The position numbers and the translations under genes were made by a program. This document shows positions 6,201-39,100 of a stretch of 64,000 bases of DNA, piece after piece (position 1 is the stretch's first letter; the number at the start of each line of letters is the position of its first letter). The notes below the pieces were generated by a model. The model was given only the letters and a program-made list of their open reading frames with translations. It was not told where the DNA came from and ran no database searches. This DNA comes from Chrysemys picta bellii (Eukaryota): the NCBI RefSeq assembly GCF_011386835.1, contig NC_088806.1, forward strand, positions 22,630,001-22,694,000, given 5' to 3'.

Positions 6201-9200
6201 TCTGCAATTTCATATTTGAGTTCCTTCAGAATGTTTGGGGGATACCAACTGGTCCTGGTAACTTGCTACTGTTTAATTTATCAATTTGTTCCAAAACCTC
6301 CTTTACTGACACCTCAGTCTGGGACCGTTCCTCAAATTTGTCACCAAAAAGGAATGGCTCAGATGTGGGGATCACCTCTACATCCTCTCTAATATACTGG
6401 GACCAACATGGCTACACCAACAATTTTTAAAGGATACCTTTTTGTCTCTAATCACCTCTTTCACTCTGGTATTTAGCCACGTTGGCATTTTTTTAGTTCT
6501 ATTATTCTTTTTCTTATTTGGGGTGTACATTTAGTTTGAGCCTCTATTATGATGTTTTTAAATAGTCTCCTTGCAGTTTTCAGGCATTTTACCCTTGTGA
6601 CTGTTCCTTTTAATTTCCATTTAACTAGCTCTCTCATGTTTGTGTGGTTTCCCTTTTTGAAGCTAAATGCTACTGTGGTGGGTTTCTTTGGTATTTTCCC
6701 CCCTTCGAGTATTCTAAATTACTATTACCGAGCGGTTCAGCTATATTCATCTCTTGGACCAGATCCTGCATTCCACTTAGGACTAAATCAAGAATTGCCT
6801 TTCCCTTGTGGGTTCCAGGACAAGTTGCTCCATGAAGCAGTCATTTAATATGTCTAGAAGTCTCTGCAACCTTCCCTGAGGCAACGCATACCCAGGCAAG
6901 AGCATAGTTGAAATCCCCCATTATTATTGCCTTTTCTGCTTCTGTAGCATTTCTAAACGTTTTGGAAAAATAAAATAAAAAGAATATGTAATTTGTGACC
7001 AATTGTTTTTCTTTATAAAGGGCCCTCAGATCATTTTTAACCTTAAAAGCCTTATCAAATTAAAACCGTGCAAAACTCTCAAGAAAGTCTGTATGATGGT
7101 AACTATGCTGTTTGTGGGACAGATTTGGGTAGCGGGACATGAGAAAACTGCTCGGAAATAATCTAAGATGGGTTACAAGCCTTACACACTAGAATCTCAG
7201 TATGCTTTACAAACATTAGTGAATTAAACCTCACAACCCCTTGTGATGAAGGAAGTATTAATAAATCTATTTTGCAGACGGGAAATTTATGGCATAGAAG
7301 GGTCAAGTGACTTGCATGAAGTCACAGAGTCAGTGGCAGAGCAAAAATAGAACTCAAGAGTCCTGGTGGAAGCAGAAGAACACTTCCGCTCCCTATACAT
7401 GCAAATTAGGCCTAAAGCTTTATTTTCCTTGCCCATACTGAAACAAACTTTTACACGTGATTAGGGGAAATTATATAGTCTACCAGCGAGTTTATTAATT
7501 GGTAGATGTAACTAGGCTCCTATATTGTCAGTTATCACCCTTGACACACAGAATTATCAGCATTAAAACTGGTTGTTCTGGCGAATTAGTTTCAATCCTG
7601 CTGTTATCTTTCAGAGCTCCTATAGTGGAATTTCCTACATGTTCATCTTCTTCTATGTATACTTTGCAAAGTCTCCGTGTAAAATGATTCCCCAATTAAA
7701 CAGTGTTTCTATAATACATGTCTAGCTTGGAGCACTGTGCTTCTGTGTTCTGGTCAGTAAAAGCCTGATCCAAAGCCCTCTGAAGTCAATGGGAATCATT
7801 CCACTGTCTTTAATGGACTTTGGATTGGGCCCTAAATGCCTTTTTTAATGGGCAGCTATTCTCTCCACTTGACTCCAGCTGCTAGATGGCTTGGTAATAT
7901 CAGATTCTTTTACTGGAACAGAGATATACTGCCTCAATTAGTAGCAACAAGTTTTCTGGGGAGGTCAGTCCATGACAAACTAAACTATTGCAGGGGGAAC
8001 CAACTAGCTAAGATAATCATGCTCTTGCCAACTGGCACTGTCTGAGCATTTCAGCATAATGGACGGGAACAGTATCAAGGTGACCTTCAGCAGGCAGAGA
8101 AGGACTAGAAAGGGAACGAACATGATGTAGTACACATCATGCACTGCATGCTGTGTAACATACATTAGCCCTATTGTACTCCTGGGGGAATTCTGCATCA
8201 AAATATTCTGCACCAAATATGCACACAATATTTGAAAATTCTGTAAAATTCTTCATATTTTATTGGTCGAATGGTTTCAATTCTTTCGGTAATTTAGTTA
8301 AACTACAATACAATGGATGAAGAATTGGAGTGGGGAGCATTGGAGGAAATCCCCAAACTCCCTTTCAGAATAGTAATGTAGCAAGGTTTGACCCTTTATT
8401 TCTAGTTTAATAGAATATCAGTGTTGGAAGGAACCTCAGGAGATCATCTAGTCCAAACCCCTGCGCTCAAAGAAGGACTAATCCCCAGACAGATCAGATT
8501 TGTGCCCCAGATCCCTAAATGGCCCCCTCAAAGATTGAACTCACAACCCTGGGTTTAGCAGGCCAATGCTCAAACCACTGAGCTATCCCTCTTAGTCAAC
8601 AAATATATACAGTCATATGCTCAGGGTTACATCATAGGCAACTGAAGAACAAATGAGGGCTGAGGAATCAAACTCACAGTTTGTATGGGCTACTGACCAT
8701 CTCCAGAAAGGTCAGTAGCAAACAGTTCATGGAGTACATTTTGATAAGAAGTTTTTTCAGTCCAAAAATTTAGACCAGTTTTAATCACTAAAGCACCTTA
8801 AGCATTTATAAGGCCATACTATCCTTCACACCATTCTGGCCATGTAAAGGAGCCTTAAAACTTTTACACCTGTTTTATACTCCTGGGGGAGTCCTCTAAG
8901 AACAATGGGAACAAATCCCTAAAAAGGCAGGCTGCTACACTCTGCTCTGCCTGAGAGGACAGAGCCTGCCCGACACCTCACTCCTCAGAAACACCCCAAA
9001 GTTCTGCCCCTCCCTGCCAAGTGTGCTGCAATAGCGAGCGAGAGGGACAGTCTCTCTCTCTCTTGCATGACTGCCCAGCCCTTCCCCTCCCCCACGGCGG
9101 TGATTTATGTCTCAACTGGCTGCTCCAGGCACCCAAACCACCCTGCCTGCGTGACCACTCTTGCGGCTTCCTTTGCTTCCCCTTCAGAAATCATTTTTCT

Positions 9201-30100: not shown

Positions 30101-33100
30101 TTCCAACCCCAAAGAGCTTCCAGTCTAAAGAGGTAAGGTGGACAAAACAAAGCGTTATCCCATATTTTACAGCTGGGGAGATAAGGCACACAATAAGTGA
30201 CTTGCCCAGGGTCATGCGTTGAGTCTGTGGCAGAGATGGGAGCTGAACCAGATCTCCTGAGTCCCAGGCTAGTGCGCTAACAACAAGACAGCTCTTCAGA
30301 AAGCCTCTGTAGTGGGGTTCAGTGGACATGTGATGATAATTGACCTTGTCTTAGCTGTGACTTCAGCTCCAGATTGTAAGAATGAGGGTTGCCCAAATTT
30401 TTCCTAACCAAAGGGCTGTTTTGGCAACTTTCTGGGAGCACAGCATACAGGAAACTGGAGTAGATTGCCTTTACCCTTGTGTATAATAGCGAGCTGAATA
30501 CGGGTCCCCCAGTGTGTCACTTTCTGTTATCTTGGATCAAGATGGAAAATTACATTCTAGGGGCTGTAGTTTCTATGGGCCACCTTATATTAAAGGTGGT
30601 CACTTGGTCGCGGCTATGTTTGGAGAACCGCTGGAACAATTGGGAGGGCGCAGGAAAATGTCTGCCTTTTCATCTGCAGCTGGTTTGAGCAACTCGCCCA
30701 CACATACCCTCGTTCCCTAACATTTCCCTGGCCATACATGTATCCATCATAGAGCCATCAGCTCAGCTTTACTCCTTGAAGATGTGTTCTCTGCATGGTC
30801 ACATGCTGAGTGCTGGCATACTGTGGAATCAATGGGGTTCTTTACCTTTTTTTGTTCCCTGGAGCTAATGGGGCCACTGCTGCATTTTCTGTTGCTTTAA
30901 CCTTCTTTGAGAGGCATGAGCAATGATAGATGGAAGCCTCGTAGCCCCACACTTCTGCTTTGTCTCTGCTTTCCCCATTTTGGGGAAGCCTTGAGGCTTT
31001 GTTTTTTTACTGGTTAGAAGTCCAGTGCCTAGACTCTGAAGGTGAGGCTCTGCAGGAAGTGATGAGAGAAGGGATGGCACTAGCTGCTGATTTGCTCTGT
31101 GATGGTTCCTTGTCTTTGCAGGTAGTCTGGTTATATTAACCTTGATTAAACTGACCCACATAGATGTTCTGGTTTGTTTTTGTAGGTAGGGGTAAGTGAG
31201 TAAAGCTGAATAGACATCATGGGAATCTCCGCTCCTGCTTTCTTTGTCCCCTCTCTCTTCACCTGCTTTCATGGGAGTGGAATATTTACCAACCTTCTCA
31301 GTTATTTTTGACACCACCCTGTCCTGTTCCCCTACCCGTGGGTTGGATATTTTGCATGAGCTCATGGGATGTCTTGTTTCTTTTCTACTTGTACAATGGA
31401 AGATGACACTCTTTGAGGATCCTCAAGCAATTTACAGATACTAATGTAGCAAAGGGGATGGGTAGCTGACCGCATCTTATTGATGAGGAAAAAAGCATAC
31501 AGAACAGGGAAGTATTGAGGGTGTTGCAATAAATTAGTGGCAGACCCAAGAATGGAACCCAAGAGTCTAGACTTGCTAAATCAAACCATTAAGAGAGCAC
31601 TCCTTCCGTTGTATTGGACTCTGTCATGCGCATGAGAGAGGAGAATGTAAGCCACTGTGCGAACATGAGCTGTCCAGTGAGGGGAACAGCACTGCTGATT
31701 TCTAGGGTGCACAAACCAATCTGCAAAATCGGATCCTCGTTTTTACCGGCATTTCAAAATGAGCTTGGGCCTGTGATGGGTCAAGGACCTAACTGTGCAT
31801 CTCTACTCTTTAGACCCTGGCTCACTCCTCTCACTGTGTATCTGGCCCAGTTGGGGCTGGATGAAGCATGGCCCTTTGTGTTTGAACCTCAGGATTTCCA
31901 GGGAGATGTTCTCTCTCTGGGAAGTGGAGGAGAAGGGATAGAATGAGGAAGAGGCTTTGTAGGGGGCTGGTTCCTTTCTGCCATGCCCATTTGGTGCAGT
32001 TCTTCTCCCAAAGCTGACCTCCTCATATGGGAGTGAGCAGCACTGCCTAACCGAGTATTCTCTTCCTAGAGCTCTACTATGACCGGGGCAACCACCATGA
32101 ATTTGTCTCTCTGGTGAAGGATCTGGCCCGTCCTGGTGAGTTCACCCAGTCACAGACATTCGACTTCGAATTCACACATGTGGAAAAACCATACGAGTCC
32201 TACACGGGGCAGAACGTGAAGTTACGGTGAGTCTCCTCCTGCTGTCGGGTTTCTCCCAGTCCCAAGCTTCAGCCTTCTCCCTGTGCATTAGTTTTCATGG
32301 AGTGTCTTTCTAGTAAGAGCTCCAGTACCCAAGGTACCCCAAATGAACACACACCAACAGATTTAAAAATTTTAATAAAGTTAATGTTTAAAATCAAATT
32401 TACACAAGTTAAGAGGGAAGGTACTGTACATCTGGGGTCGGGCTTGGGTTATGGGGGATTTCAAGTATCGGTTACAAGGTTCACGAGGTACATACATATC
32501 ACATAACCAGCCAGGGCTGGTGCTACCATTTAGGCAAACTAGGTGGTTGCCTAGGGCGCCAAGATTTGGGGGCGCCAAAAAGCGGTGCCTCCAATTTTTT
32601 TTTACAGTGTTCCTATGCCCCCTCCCCGAGCGCGCAGTTGCCGCTTCACTTCTCCCGCCTCCCAGGCTTGCAGCACCAATCAGCTTTTTGGCGCCACAAG
32701 TCTGGGAGGGGAGGAAAATTAGAGCAGGGGCGGCATGCTCGGGGAGGAGGCGGAGCAGAGGTGAGCTGGGGTGGGGAGCTGCTGCACGGCTCCCCGGGGG
32801 AGGAGGGGAGCTGCCACGGGGGGGGGGCACCTCAGGGTGGTTGGGGGGGCTGCCGTGGGAGGGGGCGCCTCAGGGTGGAGGTGGGTGCAGGGAGCTACTG
32901 GAGGGGGGGGGGGCGCAAGGTGGAAGTGGAAGGCACCGGCCCTATAACCAGCATAGATCCAGATTGGGGTGGAGAATTTTTAAAGCGTCAGTGGATAAGT
33001 GGGCTCGGGTATGCCACCCATGGAATGTATTAAGGCCTTGTCTACACTACGAGAGTAGTTCGATTTTACTTGCATCGAATTTTTGTAATCGATATTGCAA

Positions 33101-36100
33101 AGTCGAACGTGTGTGTCCACACTAAGGACAGTAATTCGACTTTGTGCGTCCACACTAACGGTGATAGCGTCGACATTCGAAGCGGTGCACTGTGGTCAGC
33201 TATCCCACAGTTCCCGCAGTCCCCTCTGCCCATTGGAATTCTGGGTGTAGCCGGCAATGCCTTCTGGGTAACAAAATGAGTCGAGGGTGCTTTTGGGAAA
33301 CTGTCGTCATCCGTCCATCACTCCCGCCCTCCCTCCCTGAAAGCGCCGGCGGGAAAACAGTTCGCGCGCTTTTCCAGTCATTGACAGCGCGGACGCCACT
33401 GTACTCCGAGCATGGAGCCCGCTGCGACCATCGCTGCAGTTGTGGCCGCTCTCAACGTCTCGCAGCTTATCATAAAGGTTTCCCTGAGGCAGATGCAGAA
33501 AAGTCAGGCAAGGAGGCTACGGCACCGCGGTGATGTCCTGAAGTCTGAGAGTAGCACAGACCTGTCAGAAAGCAGGCGACCCAGCGCCGAGGACATCACA
33601 GTGGCAATGGGTCATGTTGATGCCGTGGAACGGCGATTCTGGGCACGGGAAACAAGCACTGAGTGGTGGGACCGCATAGTGCTGCAGGTCTGGGATGAAT
33701 CCCAGTGGCTGCGAAACTTTCGCATGCGGAAGGGAACTTTCCTGGAACTTTGTGAGTTGCTGTCCCCTGCCCTGAAGCGCAGTGACACCCGGTTGCGAGC
33801 TGCACTGAGTGTACAGAAGCGAGTGGCCATAGCCCTGTGGAAGCTTGCAACGCCAGACAGCTACCGGTCAGTCGCGAACCAGTTTGGGGTGGGCAAATCT
33901 ACCGTGGGGGTTGTTGTGATGCAAGTAGCGAAGGCAATCGTTGATGTACTGCTGCCAAAGGTAGTGACCCTGGGAAACGTGGAGGCGATCATAGATGGCT
34001 TCGCAGCGATGGGATTCCCAAACTGCGGTGGGGCCATAGATGGAACTCACATCCCTATCCTGGCACCGGACCACCAGGCCACCCAGTACATTAACCGAAA
34101 GGGATACTTTTCCATGGTGCTGCAAGCACTGGTGGACCACAGGGGACGTTTTACCAACATCTACGTGGGATGGCCGGGCAAGGTTCATGACGCTCGTGTT
34201 TTCAGGAACTCTGGTCTGTTTAGACGGCTGCAACAAGGTATTTACTTCCCGGACCACAAAATAACTGTTGGGGATGTGGAGATGCCTATAGTCATCCTCG
34301 GGGACCCAGCCTACCCGCTAATGCCCTGGCTCATGAAGCCCTATACTGGCGCCCTGGACACTGAAAAAGAACTCTTCAACTACCGGCTGAGCAAGTGCAG
34401 AATGGTGGTGGAGTGTGCTTTTGGCCGTCTCAAGGGGAGATGGAGAAGCTTACTGACTCGCTGTGATCTCAGCGAAACCAATATCCCCATTGTTATAGCA
34501 GCTTGCTGTGTGCTCCACAATCTCTGTGAGAGCAAGGGGGAGACCTTTATGGCGGGGTGGGAGGTTGAGGAAAATAGCCTGGCTGGTGATTACTCACAGC
34601 CAGACAGCCGGGCGATTAGAAGAGACCAGCGGGAAGCGCTGTGCATCCGGGAGGCTTTGAAAGCAAAGTTCCTGAGTGAGCAGGGTAACCTGTGATTTTA
34701 TAGTTTGTGTACTGAGAAGCTAAACCTGCCCCCGTTTCTTTACCCAGGTAATGTTGACTATCCTATCCAGTTACATACCCCCTTCACCCCCCCTCCAACA
34801 CACGTGTCGAAATAAAAATAGTTCTACTTTGTTAAAGCACACCGTTTTCTTTAATACTGTTTTAGCGGGAATTTTTTAAAACTGGGACGCAGACTGTGGT
34901 GCGGGGCGGGTCTAGTGTTGTGATGCGAATGCAGCTTCTAAACTCAAGGATTGACAGGCTCCGCTGCGGTGGGATGCTTGTTTCAACGGAGCCTGTCACC
35001 CCTCCTGATCGGGACTGTGTGTATGGGAGGTCTATTTGACTTTGTGGCAGGGGGAGGACGGTTACAGATCCCATGCTGTGTGGCTCTGTGATCCTGTCTA
35101 AGGACCGGCGCTTAAGATCTGTAACTGCCCTCCCCCGCCACAAAGTCACAGAGCAACCCACCCCCCCCAACATTACATCAAAACAACCTCCCAGACTAAC
35201 CGGGGCAACTAGTCACTGCATCACTGCACTGTGTATGTGCCCTGCTGCTGTGCCTGCCCCCGACTATGTACCCTGCCAAAGGAGACTGTCCTGTCCAATT
35301 TCCAACCCCCTTTCCCCTCCTCCTCCAAAAGAACATGATTGAAACAGTAGTTAACAGAAACGAATTTTTTATTATCAACTACACATGGCATTGGGAGGTG
35401 AAACTTGGACGTGGGCTTGTGTCAGGCGGGAAGGAAAGAACTTTTCAAATTTTGGGAAATGAGAGCCTTCTGCTACTAGAGCTCTCTGCAGGGGTGGAGT
35501 GAGAGTTAGCAGGGACTCTGCCGCCTCTCCTTCTTTGCACTTTGGGTGAGGTGGGTATGGGACTTGGTGGCGGGGGAGGGCGGTTAGAGATGGACTGCAG
35601 CGGGGCTCTGTCCTCCTGCCTCCGTTCCTGCAGAACATCCACAAGGCGCCGGAGCGTGTCCGTTTGCTCCCTCAGTAGTCCAAGCAGCGTTAGAGTCGCC
35701 TGCTGGTCTTCCTGCCGCCACCTCTCCTCCCGATCCATGTTGGCTTGGTGCATTCGGGTCAAGTTCTCCCGCCACTGGGTCTGCTGTGCTGCCTGGGCTT
35801 GGGAAGAGGCCATAAGCTCAGAGAACATGTCCTCCCGTGTCCTCTTCTTCCTACGCCTAATCCGCGCTAGCCTCTGGGAGTGTGATTCCAGGCTAGGTTG
35901 TGAGACAGTCGCAGACGGGGCTGTGGAAATGGGAAAAAGGGAGTGAATTCCTCAGAAAGATAAATGTAGTTGTGAACAAAGAACATAGTCTTTCTCTGTG
36001 AACAAGACCATGCACAGCACCTTTCACATGCGCACTCAGCACAAGGTCGAATTCTCGGCCTTCGCATTCTGTGCCTGGGGTCTTGAACAGCACATTTGAG

Positions 36101-39100
36101 AAGCGAGGCAGCACAACGGAATTTCTGTTGCAGGCAGACATGGTAAGCCGTACACTTGTGGCAGTTTAAAACTTTTATATTACCACTGGCCTCATTTCAC
36201 ATTTAAATCAATGTCAGTCCCTGCTGCCAGCAATCCGGCAAGCGGGAACTCTGCCCCTGTCCCACCCCCTCGCGGCTGTCCCCGGGAATGATCCCTTTCG
36301 GCTGCCCCTCTCCCGCCTCCACCGCGTGGCTGCAAACCAGCGGTGACAGTTCTGTAAAGGAACGGGAAAGCAGTCCCAACACTAACATTCCCCTACCTAA
36401 TTAAAAGCAGGTCACCATGGCCGACATCACCCTGATGAGGATCTCCGAGAGCGACAAAGAGAGAATGCTCCGGGAAAGCCTCCAAAGACCAGGGCCGTAT
36501 GCCGCCCTGCTGTGCAGAGCAATGATCCCCGAGTACCTGATAATCTCGTGGCGCGGCAACGTGTCGTACTTCGGAGGACCCAATAAGGCCGCTCTCCCCA
36601 AGAACCTCATGCAACGGCTTTCAAGTTACCTCCAGGAGAGCTTCATCGAGATGTCCCAGGAGGATTACTGCTCTATCCCCGCACATATAGACCGCATTTT
36701 ACTGTAGCTGCAGTAGCAGGGAATACACAGTAGAGCGGCTTGTGCAGGACAATCACTGAAAACCGGACATTGCTAGATTTCTTTTCAAAACTTGCACTGC
36801 CCCTTACTAAACCGTTAAGCGCCTAGGGCACACTAATCATGAACAACCCATTCTTTTAATTGTTAATATTCCTGTTTTGTTAAAAATAAATGTTTAGATG
36901 TTTACAACACTTACTGGCTGATCCTTCACCAGATTCTGTGTCCGGGGTAATGGCTGGGGACGCTTCGTAGAGGATCTCTGTAAGGGTGATGAAGAGATCC
37001 TGGCTGTCGGGGAAATCAGCGTTGTGAGAGCTGCCAACTGCCTCGCCCTCCTCATCTCCTTCCTCATCTTCCCCGTCCCCTAACATGTCTGAGGAACCGG
37101 CCGTGGACAGTATCCCATCCTCAGAGTCCACGGTCACTGGTGGGGTAGTGGTGGCGGCAGCACCGAGGATGGAATGCAGTGCCTCGTAGAAACGGGATGT
37201 CTGGGGATGGGATCCGGAGCGTCCGTTTGCCTCTTTGGTCTTCTGGTAGCCTTGTCTCAGCTCCTTGATTTTCACGCGGCACTGCGTTGCATCCCGGCTG
37301 TATCCTCTCTCTGCCATGTCTTTAGAGATCTTCTCGTAGATCTTTGCATTCCTTCTTTTGGATCGCAGCTCGGAAAGCACGGACTCATCGCCCCACACAG
37401 CGATGAGATCCAAGACTTCACGATCAGTCCATGCTGGGGCTCTCTTTCTATTCACAGACTGCATGGCCATCACTGCTGGAGAGCTCTGCATCGTTGCCAG
37501 TGCTGCTGTGCTCGCCACGATGTCCAGACAGGAAATGAGATTCAAACTGGCCAGACAGGAAAAGGAATTCAAATTCAAATTTTCCCGGGGCTTTTCCTGT
37601 GTGGCTGGTCAGAGCATCCGAGCTCGCACTGCTGTCCAGAGCGTCAACAGAGTGGTGCACTGTGGGATAGCTCCCGGAGCTATTAGCGTCGATTTCCATC
37701 CACACCTAGCCTAATTCGACATGGCCATGTCGAATTTAGCGCTACTCCCCTCGTCGGGGAGGAGTACAGAAGTCGAATTAAAGAGACCTCTATGTCGAAC
37801 TAAATAGCATCGCAGTGTGGACGGGTGCAGGGTTAATTCGATTTAACGGCGCTAACTTCGACATAAACGCCTAGTGTAGACCAGGCCTAAGAGTCCAAGT
37901 CGATATTGGCGTAGAGAATAAGTACATGGGTAGGGTGCGTCCCTCGGTTCGTCAGGGAAGGAAGTGGGTTATTTCCCTGGTCGGTGTTCTCGGTTACTCA
38001 ACTTGGTGCTGGTGGTGTCCCGTGATGTGTTCCATGTAGATGTCTCTGGACCACCTGATGGTGTCAGACACCATGAGCTGTCTCGTGAGCCGGGCGTAGC
38101 GTCGACCGACTCCGCACGCTCTCAGTACTGGCTCGTTGTGGGGGTCCCATGCGCCCAGGGCTCCCACGACCAGGGCATGTATCTGGACCTCATAGCCCTA
38201 CAGCAGCACGAGGGTCTAATACCTATGTCTAAGAGTCGAATTAGGAAGAATAGATAGAACTACGATCTACCTTAAATATAATAAGGAACAACTGAAAATC
38301 CAATAGGGAACTGACAACTTTGACAGCGTGATAACATAGGGCTAGTCTACACTGGCAACGGTAAAGCGCTGCCGCAGTAGCACTTTAACGTGGCTTGTGT
38401 AGTCACACCGCTCTTCCAGCGCTCTAAAAAAAAAACCCACCTCCATGATGGGTATAGCTACCAGCGCTCGTGCACTGTCTGCAGTGGCGCTTTACAAGTG
38501 CTGAAACTTGCTGTGCTCAGGGGGGTGTTTTTTCACAGAAAGTTGCAGAGCTGTAAAGTGCCAGTGTAGACAAGCCCATAGACTAGGGCCATGGGGAATG
38601 GGTCTTGCCTTTGAAACCCATGGGAAATCAGAGCTCAGGAGTGTTAATTGTTTAAGAGGGGCGTGTCATTGAAAAGTGATTGAACTGCTGTTAAACTAAC
38701 CATTTTCTATCATTTTAAAACAAGCTGACAGTAACTTCTAAAATCTGATTTCCCAGGCGTTCCAGCCCGAGCTGTTTCCCCCCAGCAGGGAGGAAATATT
38801 GATAAAATGCTATTCCCAGCTGAGAGGGGCACCACACTCCCAGTTAACCCTGTAGAGAGAACAGAGCAGTGCTGATCATTTCTAAAGGCTGCTGAAGAAA
38901 TTAATTTCTAATCTGTATCTCTAGTAAATACACAGTTTACTGGACTCTCCCTTTTAAACTGAATTGTGGCTCTTCATGTGCATGCATGTGTGTTGAGCCC
39001 CTCAAGCTGCTGTTTGTGTGGGGGGTCACGGTATAGTCCCATTTCGTGTTGAAGCACTAGGGCATGGGGGTGGATTGACAGTTCAGATACTATGTGTGGG

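Follow-up and report, generated by a model that had tools for sequence, protein, structure and literature searches.

A probable third gene for a predicted BEN-fold protein in the Myb intron of a turtle PIF/Harbinger transposon

Among DNA transposons, Harbingers are the standard example of a two-protein element, and the domesticated genes HARBI1/NAIF1 and MSANTD derive from them. They have been described as two-gene elements with two ORFs (open reading frames; PMC9179366, PMC2836001). We examined a Harbinger in the painted turtle Chrysemys picta bellii, within a window of 64,000 nucleotides of contig NC_088806.1 (assembly GCF_011386835.1, positions 22,630,001 to 22,694,000 of the forward strand); all coordinates below are those of the window. 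The element carries a transposase gene and, on the opposite strand, a Myb/SANT-like gene. A small plus-strand gene lies inside the intron of the Myb-like gene, and in our judgement it is probably a genuine third gene of this turtle PIF/Harbinger lineage, encoding a 99-aa protein with a BEN fold.

Judged from its sequence, the third gene is a two-exon plus-strand unit contained wholly within the intron of the minus-strand Myb-like gene, with a first coding exon that consists of the ATG only. The start codon (36140..36142, plus strand; context gcagacATG/gtaagc) forms the last three bases of the first exon and is followed by a 268-nt intron (36143..36410), whose splice motifs are GTAAGC at 36143-36148, CTAAC at 36382-36386 and CAG at 36408-36410. 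The coding part of exon 2 (36411..36707, plus strand) opens with GTC ACC ATG G at 36411 and comprises 98 codons and the TAG at 36705-36707; its recognition as a coding part, and as that of a BEN-fold protein, draws on dN/dS, alignment to a relative in Malaclemys, AlphaFold modelling and BEN matches, all presented below. The full spliced product has 99 aa, and the ORF from the internal ATG (36417-36707) has 96 aa. A 3′ untranslated region (36708..36910, plus strand) with AATAAA at 36885-36890 ends about 5-25 nt before the donor of Myb exon 1 on the other strand. Each of the two ATGs is preceded by a purine at -3 and followed by G at +4. The ORF contains 18 CpGs, with an observed/expected ratio (o/e) of 0.80 compared to 0.60 in the transposase gene and 0.64 in Myb exon 1. 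A preliminary description of this DNA had drawn such a mini-gene, with strong Kozak context at both ATGs and an ORF as CpG-rich as the other two genes; reading of the sequence confirmed all of its coordinates and both of these features.

The Harbinger itself is a complete element of 4,855 bp at 33034..37888 (no strand assigned), with boundaries read directly from the inverted repeat and the flanks. TAA target-site duplications flank it at 33031-33033 and 37889-37891: on the left TAA is followed by GGCCTTGTCTACACT, and on the right AGTGTAGACCAGGCC is followed by TAA. The termini are GGCCTTGTCTACACT and GGCCTGGTCTACACT, and the element thus shows the terminal inverted repeats (TIRs) and 3-bp TWA duplication of PIF/Harbinger transposons. 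The left TIR is GGCCTTGTCTACACTA (33034..33049, plus strand), and the right TIR, read inward, is GGCCTGGTCTACACTA (37873..37888, minus strand). The left TIR is followed by the subterminal repeats AATTCGA(C) and GTCCACACT, and the same motifs are repeated in both element ends. CpG o/e was 1.11 and 0.91 in the element ends compared to 0.34-0.45 in the flanks. The window holds one copy of the element.

Both gene products that define membership in PIF/Harbinger, a DDE transposase and a Myb/SANT-like second protein, are encoded. The transposase gene (33412..34695, plus strand) has an intact ORF of 427 aa that matches Pfam DDE_Tnp_4 (PF13359; E 3.3e-37, 128 bits), and its poly(A) signal, AATAAA at 34811, is separate from that of the third gene. 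The Myb/SANT-like gene consists of coding exon 1 (36915..37491, minus strand; Pfam Myb_DNA-bind_4, PF13837, E 9.8e-22), a 994-nt intron (35921..36914, minus strand) and coding exon 2 (35445..35920, minus strand; stop at 35445-35447), the last two drawn from RNA contigs and, for exon 2, its ORF. The minus-strand poly(A) signal of this gene lies at 35368-35373. Spliced together, 37491-36915 and 35920-35445 encode an uninterrupted protein of 350 aa. Expression was assessed with assembled contigs from four public RNA runs that match the element; such contigs hide rare forms and show presence rather than absence. The Myb intron that had been proposed from sequence was recovered in three of the four runs (X1, X3 and X4), where contigs join 35920 to 36915 and skip 994 nt (CT..AC, that is GT..AG on the minus strand). 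The presence of this junction in the contigs indicates that those runs contain RNA.

To assess conservation of the third gene, a profile combining the ORF with its first two relatives was searched against 1.84 billion representative proteins, and 82 homologues were found at E <= 0.001. Genomic loci L001-L006 and L008 are turtle relatives, with L001 from Malaclemys and L006 and L008 from Chelonia. The Malaclemys locus showed the same order of transposase (75% identical), Myb exon 2, small plus-strand ORF and Myb exon 1. When the window was compared to it by blastn only the three coding blocks aligned, including the small ORF (36405-36727, 70.7%), and the Myb intron around the ORF was unalignable except for a 150-nt stretch beside Myb exon 2. 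dN/dS of the small ORF was 0.16 (window and L001), 0.24 (window and L002) and 0.32 (L001 and L002), and the neighbouring genes gave 0.32 (transposase) and 0.16 (Myb exon 1). The 90 differences between the window and L001, a 66%-identical relative, are distributed 26/18/46 over codon positions 1/2/3. Random-substitution simulations for this pair kept the frame open at the observed amino-acid identity in 0 of 20,000 trials. At the level of sequence, these comparisons establish that purifying selection has maintained the third gene across several Harbinger subfamilies, at protein identities of 35-94%, and that it is nested at the same place in each.

The upstream region was also conserved. The start/donor block TTGCAGGCAGcCATG/GTAAG is kept in L001, L003 and L004, and the TTGCAGGCAGcC ATG/GTAAG block is conspicuous amid the unalignable intron in the window and in these three loci. 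The Chelonia subfamily (L006 and L008; 35% protein identity) has, in order, ATG/GTGAGT, a 131-133-nt intron, acceptor, ORF, AATAAA and the opposite-strand donor of Myb exon 1; in L006 the AATAAA occupies the place equivalent to that in the window. Introns at the equivalent position in relatives measure 131-440 nt. The ATG/GT donor was kept in all six turtle loci with readable upstream sequence (the window, L001, L003, L004, L006 and L008), down to 35% identity; the contigs of L002 and L005 end before this region and fall outside the donor comparison. The internal Met is absent in L002 (CTA), L004 (ACG), L005, L006 and L008, and therefore translation in these loci must begin at the upstream ATG. 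This requirement in the Met-less subfamilies is the strongest argument for the two-exon model. Start, donor, acceptor, frame and poly(A) signal were thus all kept among diverged relatives with dN/dS below 1, as is expected of a gene. The preliminary description had proposed conserved position and dN/dS < 1 as a check, which returned the same nested position and values of 0.16-0.32; with the architecture found in relatives, its claim of a real, selectively maintained element gene with the two-exon structure that it had drawn is upheld.

Internally deleted Harbingers were also present among the relatives. Those at L003 (24054-25955) and L004 (7110-9474) retain the 5′ part of the transposase, the ATG mini-exon, the BEN exon and Myb exon 1. 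Both the internal ATG and the stop codon are already mutated in L004.

The third product was modelled with AlphaFold2 from a 40-sequence alignment. The predicted structure is compact, with five helices and short strands (pLDDT 96.1, pTM 0.87). Its best Foldseek matches in the PDB were BEND3 BEN4 and BEN3, NACC1, BANP, BEND6 and Insv, with TM 0.71 to 7w27_C. VIA-align against BEND3 BEN4 (7v9i_A) gave Z 12.0 and an rmsd of 2.1 A over 87 residues. The 15 best solved matches were all BEN domains (Z 12.0-5.1), and the next match scored 2.3. Among clusters of the AlphaFold database (AFDB), the protein's own family ranked first, followed by about 25 BEN-domain proteins from many animal phyla. The Atlas language-model neighbours of the protein are BEN clusters, and one fish relative is labelled a BEN-domain protein by UniRef. 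A BEN fold, with the compact helical domain typical of it, is well supported for the third product by these predictions.

The closest reviewed protein was Xenopus laevis Pat (Xpat, O73622), at residues 186-280 (Foldseek E 1.4e-7, TM 0.89, 26% identity). A profile made from three turtle sequences gave E 2.9e-4 for a pipefish 'protein Pat-like' and values as low as E 2.5e-13 for fish relatives. On the predicted structure and these matches, the third product would belong to the Xpat/Pat-like branch and consist of one bare BEN-fold domain. A maximum-likelihood tree of the domain placed the 19 turtle sequences in one clade (100/97), and the genomic loci read from this clade were all element-borne. 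The turtle clade, gecko and two unplaced sequences grouped together (99/96) opposite the fish, frog, Pat-like and Pelodiscus host sequences, in a tree that was rooted at its midpoint only and leaves the direction of transfer unset.

Homologues were also found as host genes. The pipefish Pat-like gene (L007 7001-7712) lies inside an ATF7IP intron in the same orientation, and a distance of 7 kb around it is free of Harbinger genes; its first coding exon is very short (ATGTCCAG). Such a tiny first exon is in line with a host gene having entered the Myb intron by capture, together with its own intron, but does not prove this. Pelodiscus LOC112546363 is a free-standing homologue outside a Harbinger. 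The link to host BEN-type genes suggested in the preliminary description is borne out by these Xpat/Pat-like homologues and by the predicted host isoforms that end in the exon, considered below. Separately, in fishes and frogs the domain was seen at the C-terminus of models of ZMYM4 (two copies), hnRNPUL1 isoform X2 and PYRIN-domain proteins (P0041, P0080, P0062 and P0075), which are either real fusions or transposon-trapped models.

Several gene models end in the third-gene exon. RefSeq isoforms of this type are TEDC1 (X5) and RAB3C (X3) in Chrysemys, CDK6 (X2) in Malaclemys, a GlyT1-like gene in Mauremys, and LOC128826488; the same exon is also terminal in a GTPBP1 isoform cluster (Atlas) and in a gecko KDM4B-like protein. 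The TEDC1 isoform is 94% identical to the third-gene product of the window. The models provide indirect support for the acceptor, and on their showing the exon appears to trap host transcripts. At L001, a model splices an exon 4.2 kb upstream (8001-8078) directly to the BEN-exon acceptor, bypassing the ATG mini-exon. The Harbinger begins about 1.2 kb beyond this upstream exon, which is embedded in sequence with a Harbinger-type terminus at its end (…AGTGTGGACCAGCCC), and the region is probably another miniature inverted-repeat transposable element (MITE) that supplies the donor.

Several results weigh against a BEN-fold third gene as described here. Pfam returned nothing for the third protein, with no PF10523 match even at E 10, and the window protein therefore fails the gathering score of that profile (23.2 bits). 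When the protein, a fish relative and the 40-sequence profile were used to search PDB sequences, no BEN chain was recovered, and the matches, among them TFIIA gamma at E 0.1, were noise. The pI of the window copy is 6.75, near neutral and atypical of a DNA binder; relatives have pI 9-11. The junction 36142->36411, which the preliminary description had expected in RNA, was absent from the contigs of all four runs, although the Myb junction was seen in three of them; as contigs show presence rather than absence, this is a weak negative. In addition, perfectly matching unspliced contigs (36040-36485 and 36040-36500) span both splice sites. The host-fusion isoforms are database predictions, not read-level data. 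In the four runs, summed contig depth in exon 2 was 2-4x that of the mini-intron and 5-10x that of the spacer between the transposase and Myb genes, and the end of one contig, at 36907, is as far from AATAAA as a cleavage site would be expected to be. Both observations are compatible with expression of the third gene but are not proof, and depth was rejected as such because it sums paralogous copies and does not measure expression cleanly. The starts of contigs at 35993 and 36040 were likewise rejected as transcription starts, since contig ends track k-mer branch points at variant sites.

With respect to the fold, sub-threshold Pfam BEN matches were seen in 9 of the 40 aligned relatives (best E 0.0055; P0029 reached 20.8 bits), and the third protein is too divergent for the Pfam BEN profile. 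LIN-14 provides a precedent for a BEN domain visible only by structure (PMC10080584). The suggestion that the product is BEN-like was sustained by AlphaFold and Foldseek (Z 12.0 to BEND3 BEN4), by language-model neighbours and by the sub-threshold matches of relatives, whereas the PF10523 match proposed for it was not obtained.

Three other explanations were considered. The empty Pfam result, the unseen junction and the fact that the exact 96-aa ORF is not on record among called genes could each be expected of a chance ORF in an intron with fortuitous splice-like motifs. This explanation is refuted by the 82 homologues, dN/dS of 0.16-0.32, the simulations (0/20,000), a confident fold and the conserved architecture, and we give it practically no credence. 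The unseen junction would also follow if the exon served as an alternative 3′ terminal exon for transcripts from the transposase or a host promoter, in which case the real products would be fusions of the transposase N-terminus and the BEN domain, acting as truncated-transposase-like regulators. The third gene is on the same strand as the transposase, the models Malaclemys LOC128825970 X1/X2 and Chelonia P0006 and P0014 join the transposase N-terminus to the exon, and the far-upstream exon at L001 splices straight to the acceptor with omission of the ATG mini-exon. However, these transposase fusion models come from internally deleted copies or old ab initio annotation, and their donors differ from model to model. 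The transposase of the window has its own AATAAA at 34811 and no in-frame GTAAG-type donor, and a Kozak ATG/GT donor conserved in six turtle loci to 35% identity would be pointless for a purely internal acceptor. We therefore regard a purely terminal exon as unlikely.

The third gene might alternatively be a passenger, a host Pat-like/BEN gene with a tiny first exon and intron that was captured into the Myb intron and has no role in transposition. Free-standing homologues outside Harbingers (pipefish Pat-like, Xenopus Pat and Pelodiscus LOC112546363) are in keeping with such an origin, and the placement of the turtle element-borne sequences in one clade apart from the fish/frog group fits a single capture. 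A useless transposon passenger should decay, yet purifying selection on the third gene is as strong as on the transposase across subfamilies diverged to 35-66% identity, and position and structure were retained in every autonomous-type copy examined. A passenger without function seems to us slightly less likely still than a terminal exon. A genuine third gene of the Harbinger is the explanation that we favour over all three.

What the protein of this third gene does can be proposed by analogy. The BEN-solo factors provide a model of how a single BEN domain on its own can serve as a boundary factor or a sequence-specific repressor. BEN domains bind specific DNA, often containing CpG, according to a study on BANP. 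The preliminary description had put forward end-binding, regulatory or anti-silencing roles, all of which are proposals only. DNA binding by BEN domains, together with the CpG-rich ends of the element and their repeated motifs, leads us to guess at a DNA-binding accessory or regulatory factor. The third protein may assist or regulate the element as a small protein that binds specific DNA sequences, in the manner of the fly BEN-solo factors, although we hold this to be somewhat short of an even chance. Candidate targets would be the AATTCGA(C)/GTCCACACT repeats, which contain CpG and occur in each subterminal region, or the element promoters. A protein-protein role, or a germ-cell-related role like that of Xpat, may also apply. 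Complex predictions of the BEN protein with the transposase, the N-terminal part of the Myb protein and its C-terminal part scored 0.00 in a trial run without controls, which speaks neither for nor against an interaction.

Host transcripts could be affected as a by-product. On the evidence of gene models, the strong acceptor and poly(A) signal may let sense-oriented intronic insertions trap host transcripts, and trapping would yield truncated host proteins fused to a BEN domain. A more tentative proposal, which we think less likely than not, joins these ideas: a reptile lineage of Harbingers would be a true three-gene system in which an Xpat-type BEN-solo subunit binds the CpG-bearing subterminal repeats and controls transposition or silencing, and sense intronic insertions would act as BEN exon traps. 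If true, this would be a way for host proteins with a BEN domain, perhaps those of the Xpat family among them, to arise from transposons or be exchanged with them.

Further features were noted in and near the element. In run X3 a second Myb joint, 35914->36915 with six other letters (CTGTGG), was present beside the main 35920->36915 joint, and represents a splice form or a paralogous copy. The spacer between the 3′ ends of the transposase and Myb genes contains nested inverted repeats, GGGGGAGGACGGTTACAGATC and its complement, with arms of about 20-40 nt at 35032-35158 and 35550-35591; a third copy sits inside Myb exon 2. An element of about 240 bp at 38339-38577, with 19-nt inverted termini of Harbinger TIR type (GGGCTAGTCTACACTGGCA / TGCCAGTGTAGACAAGCCC, 95% complementary), is probably a MITE that derives from a Harbinger; it lies about 450 bp downstream of the autonomous element. 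In runs X3 and X6, RNA contigs join 37666 to 33217 with 11 other letters between them, at a link that adjoins the shared motif AGCTATCCCACAGT (33198-33211 and 37659-37672). This link may reflect a short deletion derivative or a MITE built from both ends.

A conserved third protein would alter the parts list of the Harbinger superfamily and provide a concrete factor for reconstituted transposition. It would also connect a mobile element with the BEN domain, the mark of a growing class of chromatin factors that read CpG and whose origin is obscure, and would give a fold to Xpat, a germ-plasm protein for which the literature searched describes no domain. An exon with acceptor and poly(A) signal would be a simple route for grafting BEN domains onto host genes. 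For annotation, the predicted CDK6, RAB3C and TEDC1 isoforms may be transposon-trapped truncations and not real host isoforms. In the papers searched, we found no report tying Harbinger to BEN or to such a third ORF, or a BEN domain to a transposon. Database entries for the product are only 'hypothetical' or 'uncharacterized' proteins or odd host isoforms.

Several known systems can be compared to the third gene. The solved BEN domains (BEND3 BEN4 7v9i/7w27, BEND3 BEN3, BANP, BEND6, NACC1 and Drosophila Insv) share its predicted fold over 81-90 residues, with Z 12.0-5.1 and TM <= 0.71, and its G-x-x-N-K-A-A-L-P-x-N-L segment occupies the place of the G...K..L motif in BEN domains. Identity to these domains is only 9-21%, however, and the turtle protein, a putative DNA binder, differs from them in being transposon-encoded and in consisting of a bare domain. 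Xpat and Pat-like proteins have a homologous C-terminal domain of about 95 residues, and the pipefish gene also has a very short first coding exon; compared to Xpat, the turtle protein is the domain alone, inside a Harbinger. The BEN-solo factors (Drosophila Insensitive and Elba1/2; vertebrate BEND5/6) are similar in having one BEN domain and no other recognisable domain, but are encoded by host genes several times longer, and their BEN domain is detectable by Pfam.

Host-transposase fusion genes form by splicing into a transposon-borne exon. Likewise, in the TEDC1, CDK6, RAB3C, GlyT1-like, GTPBP1 and gecko KDM4B-like models upstream host exons run into a transposon-borne exon that has a strong acceptor. 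In these models, in contrast to host-transposase fusions, the captured module is the accessory BEN gene and not a transposase DNA-binding domain, and all cases are predicted isoforms. The window element resembles canonical PIF/Harbinger transposons (e.g. Harbinger3_DR) in its DDE_Tnp_4 transposase, Myb/SANT-like protein, short TIRs and 3-bp TAA duplication. Whereas the canonical Harbinger has two ORFs, the turtle lineage appears to add a conserved third gene, antisense in the Myb intron.

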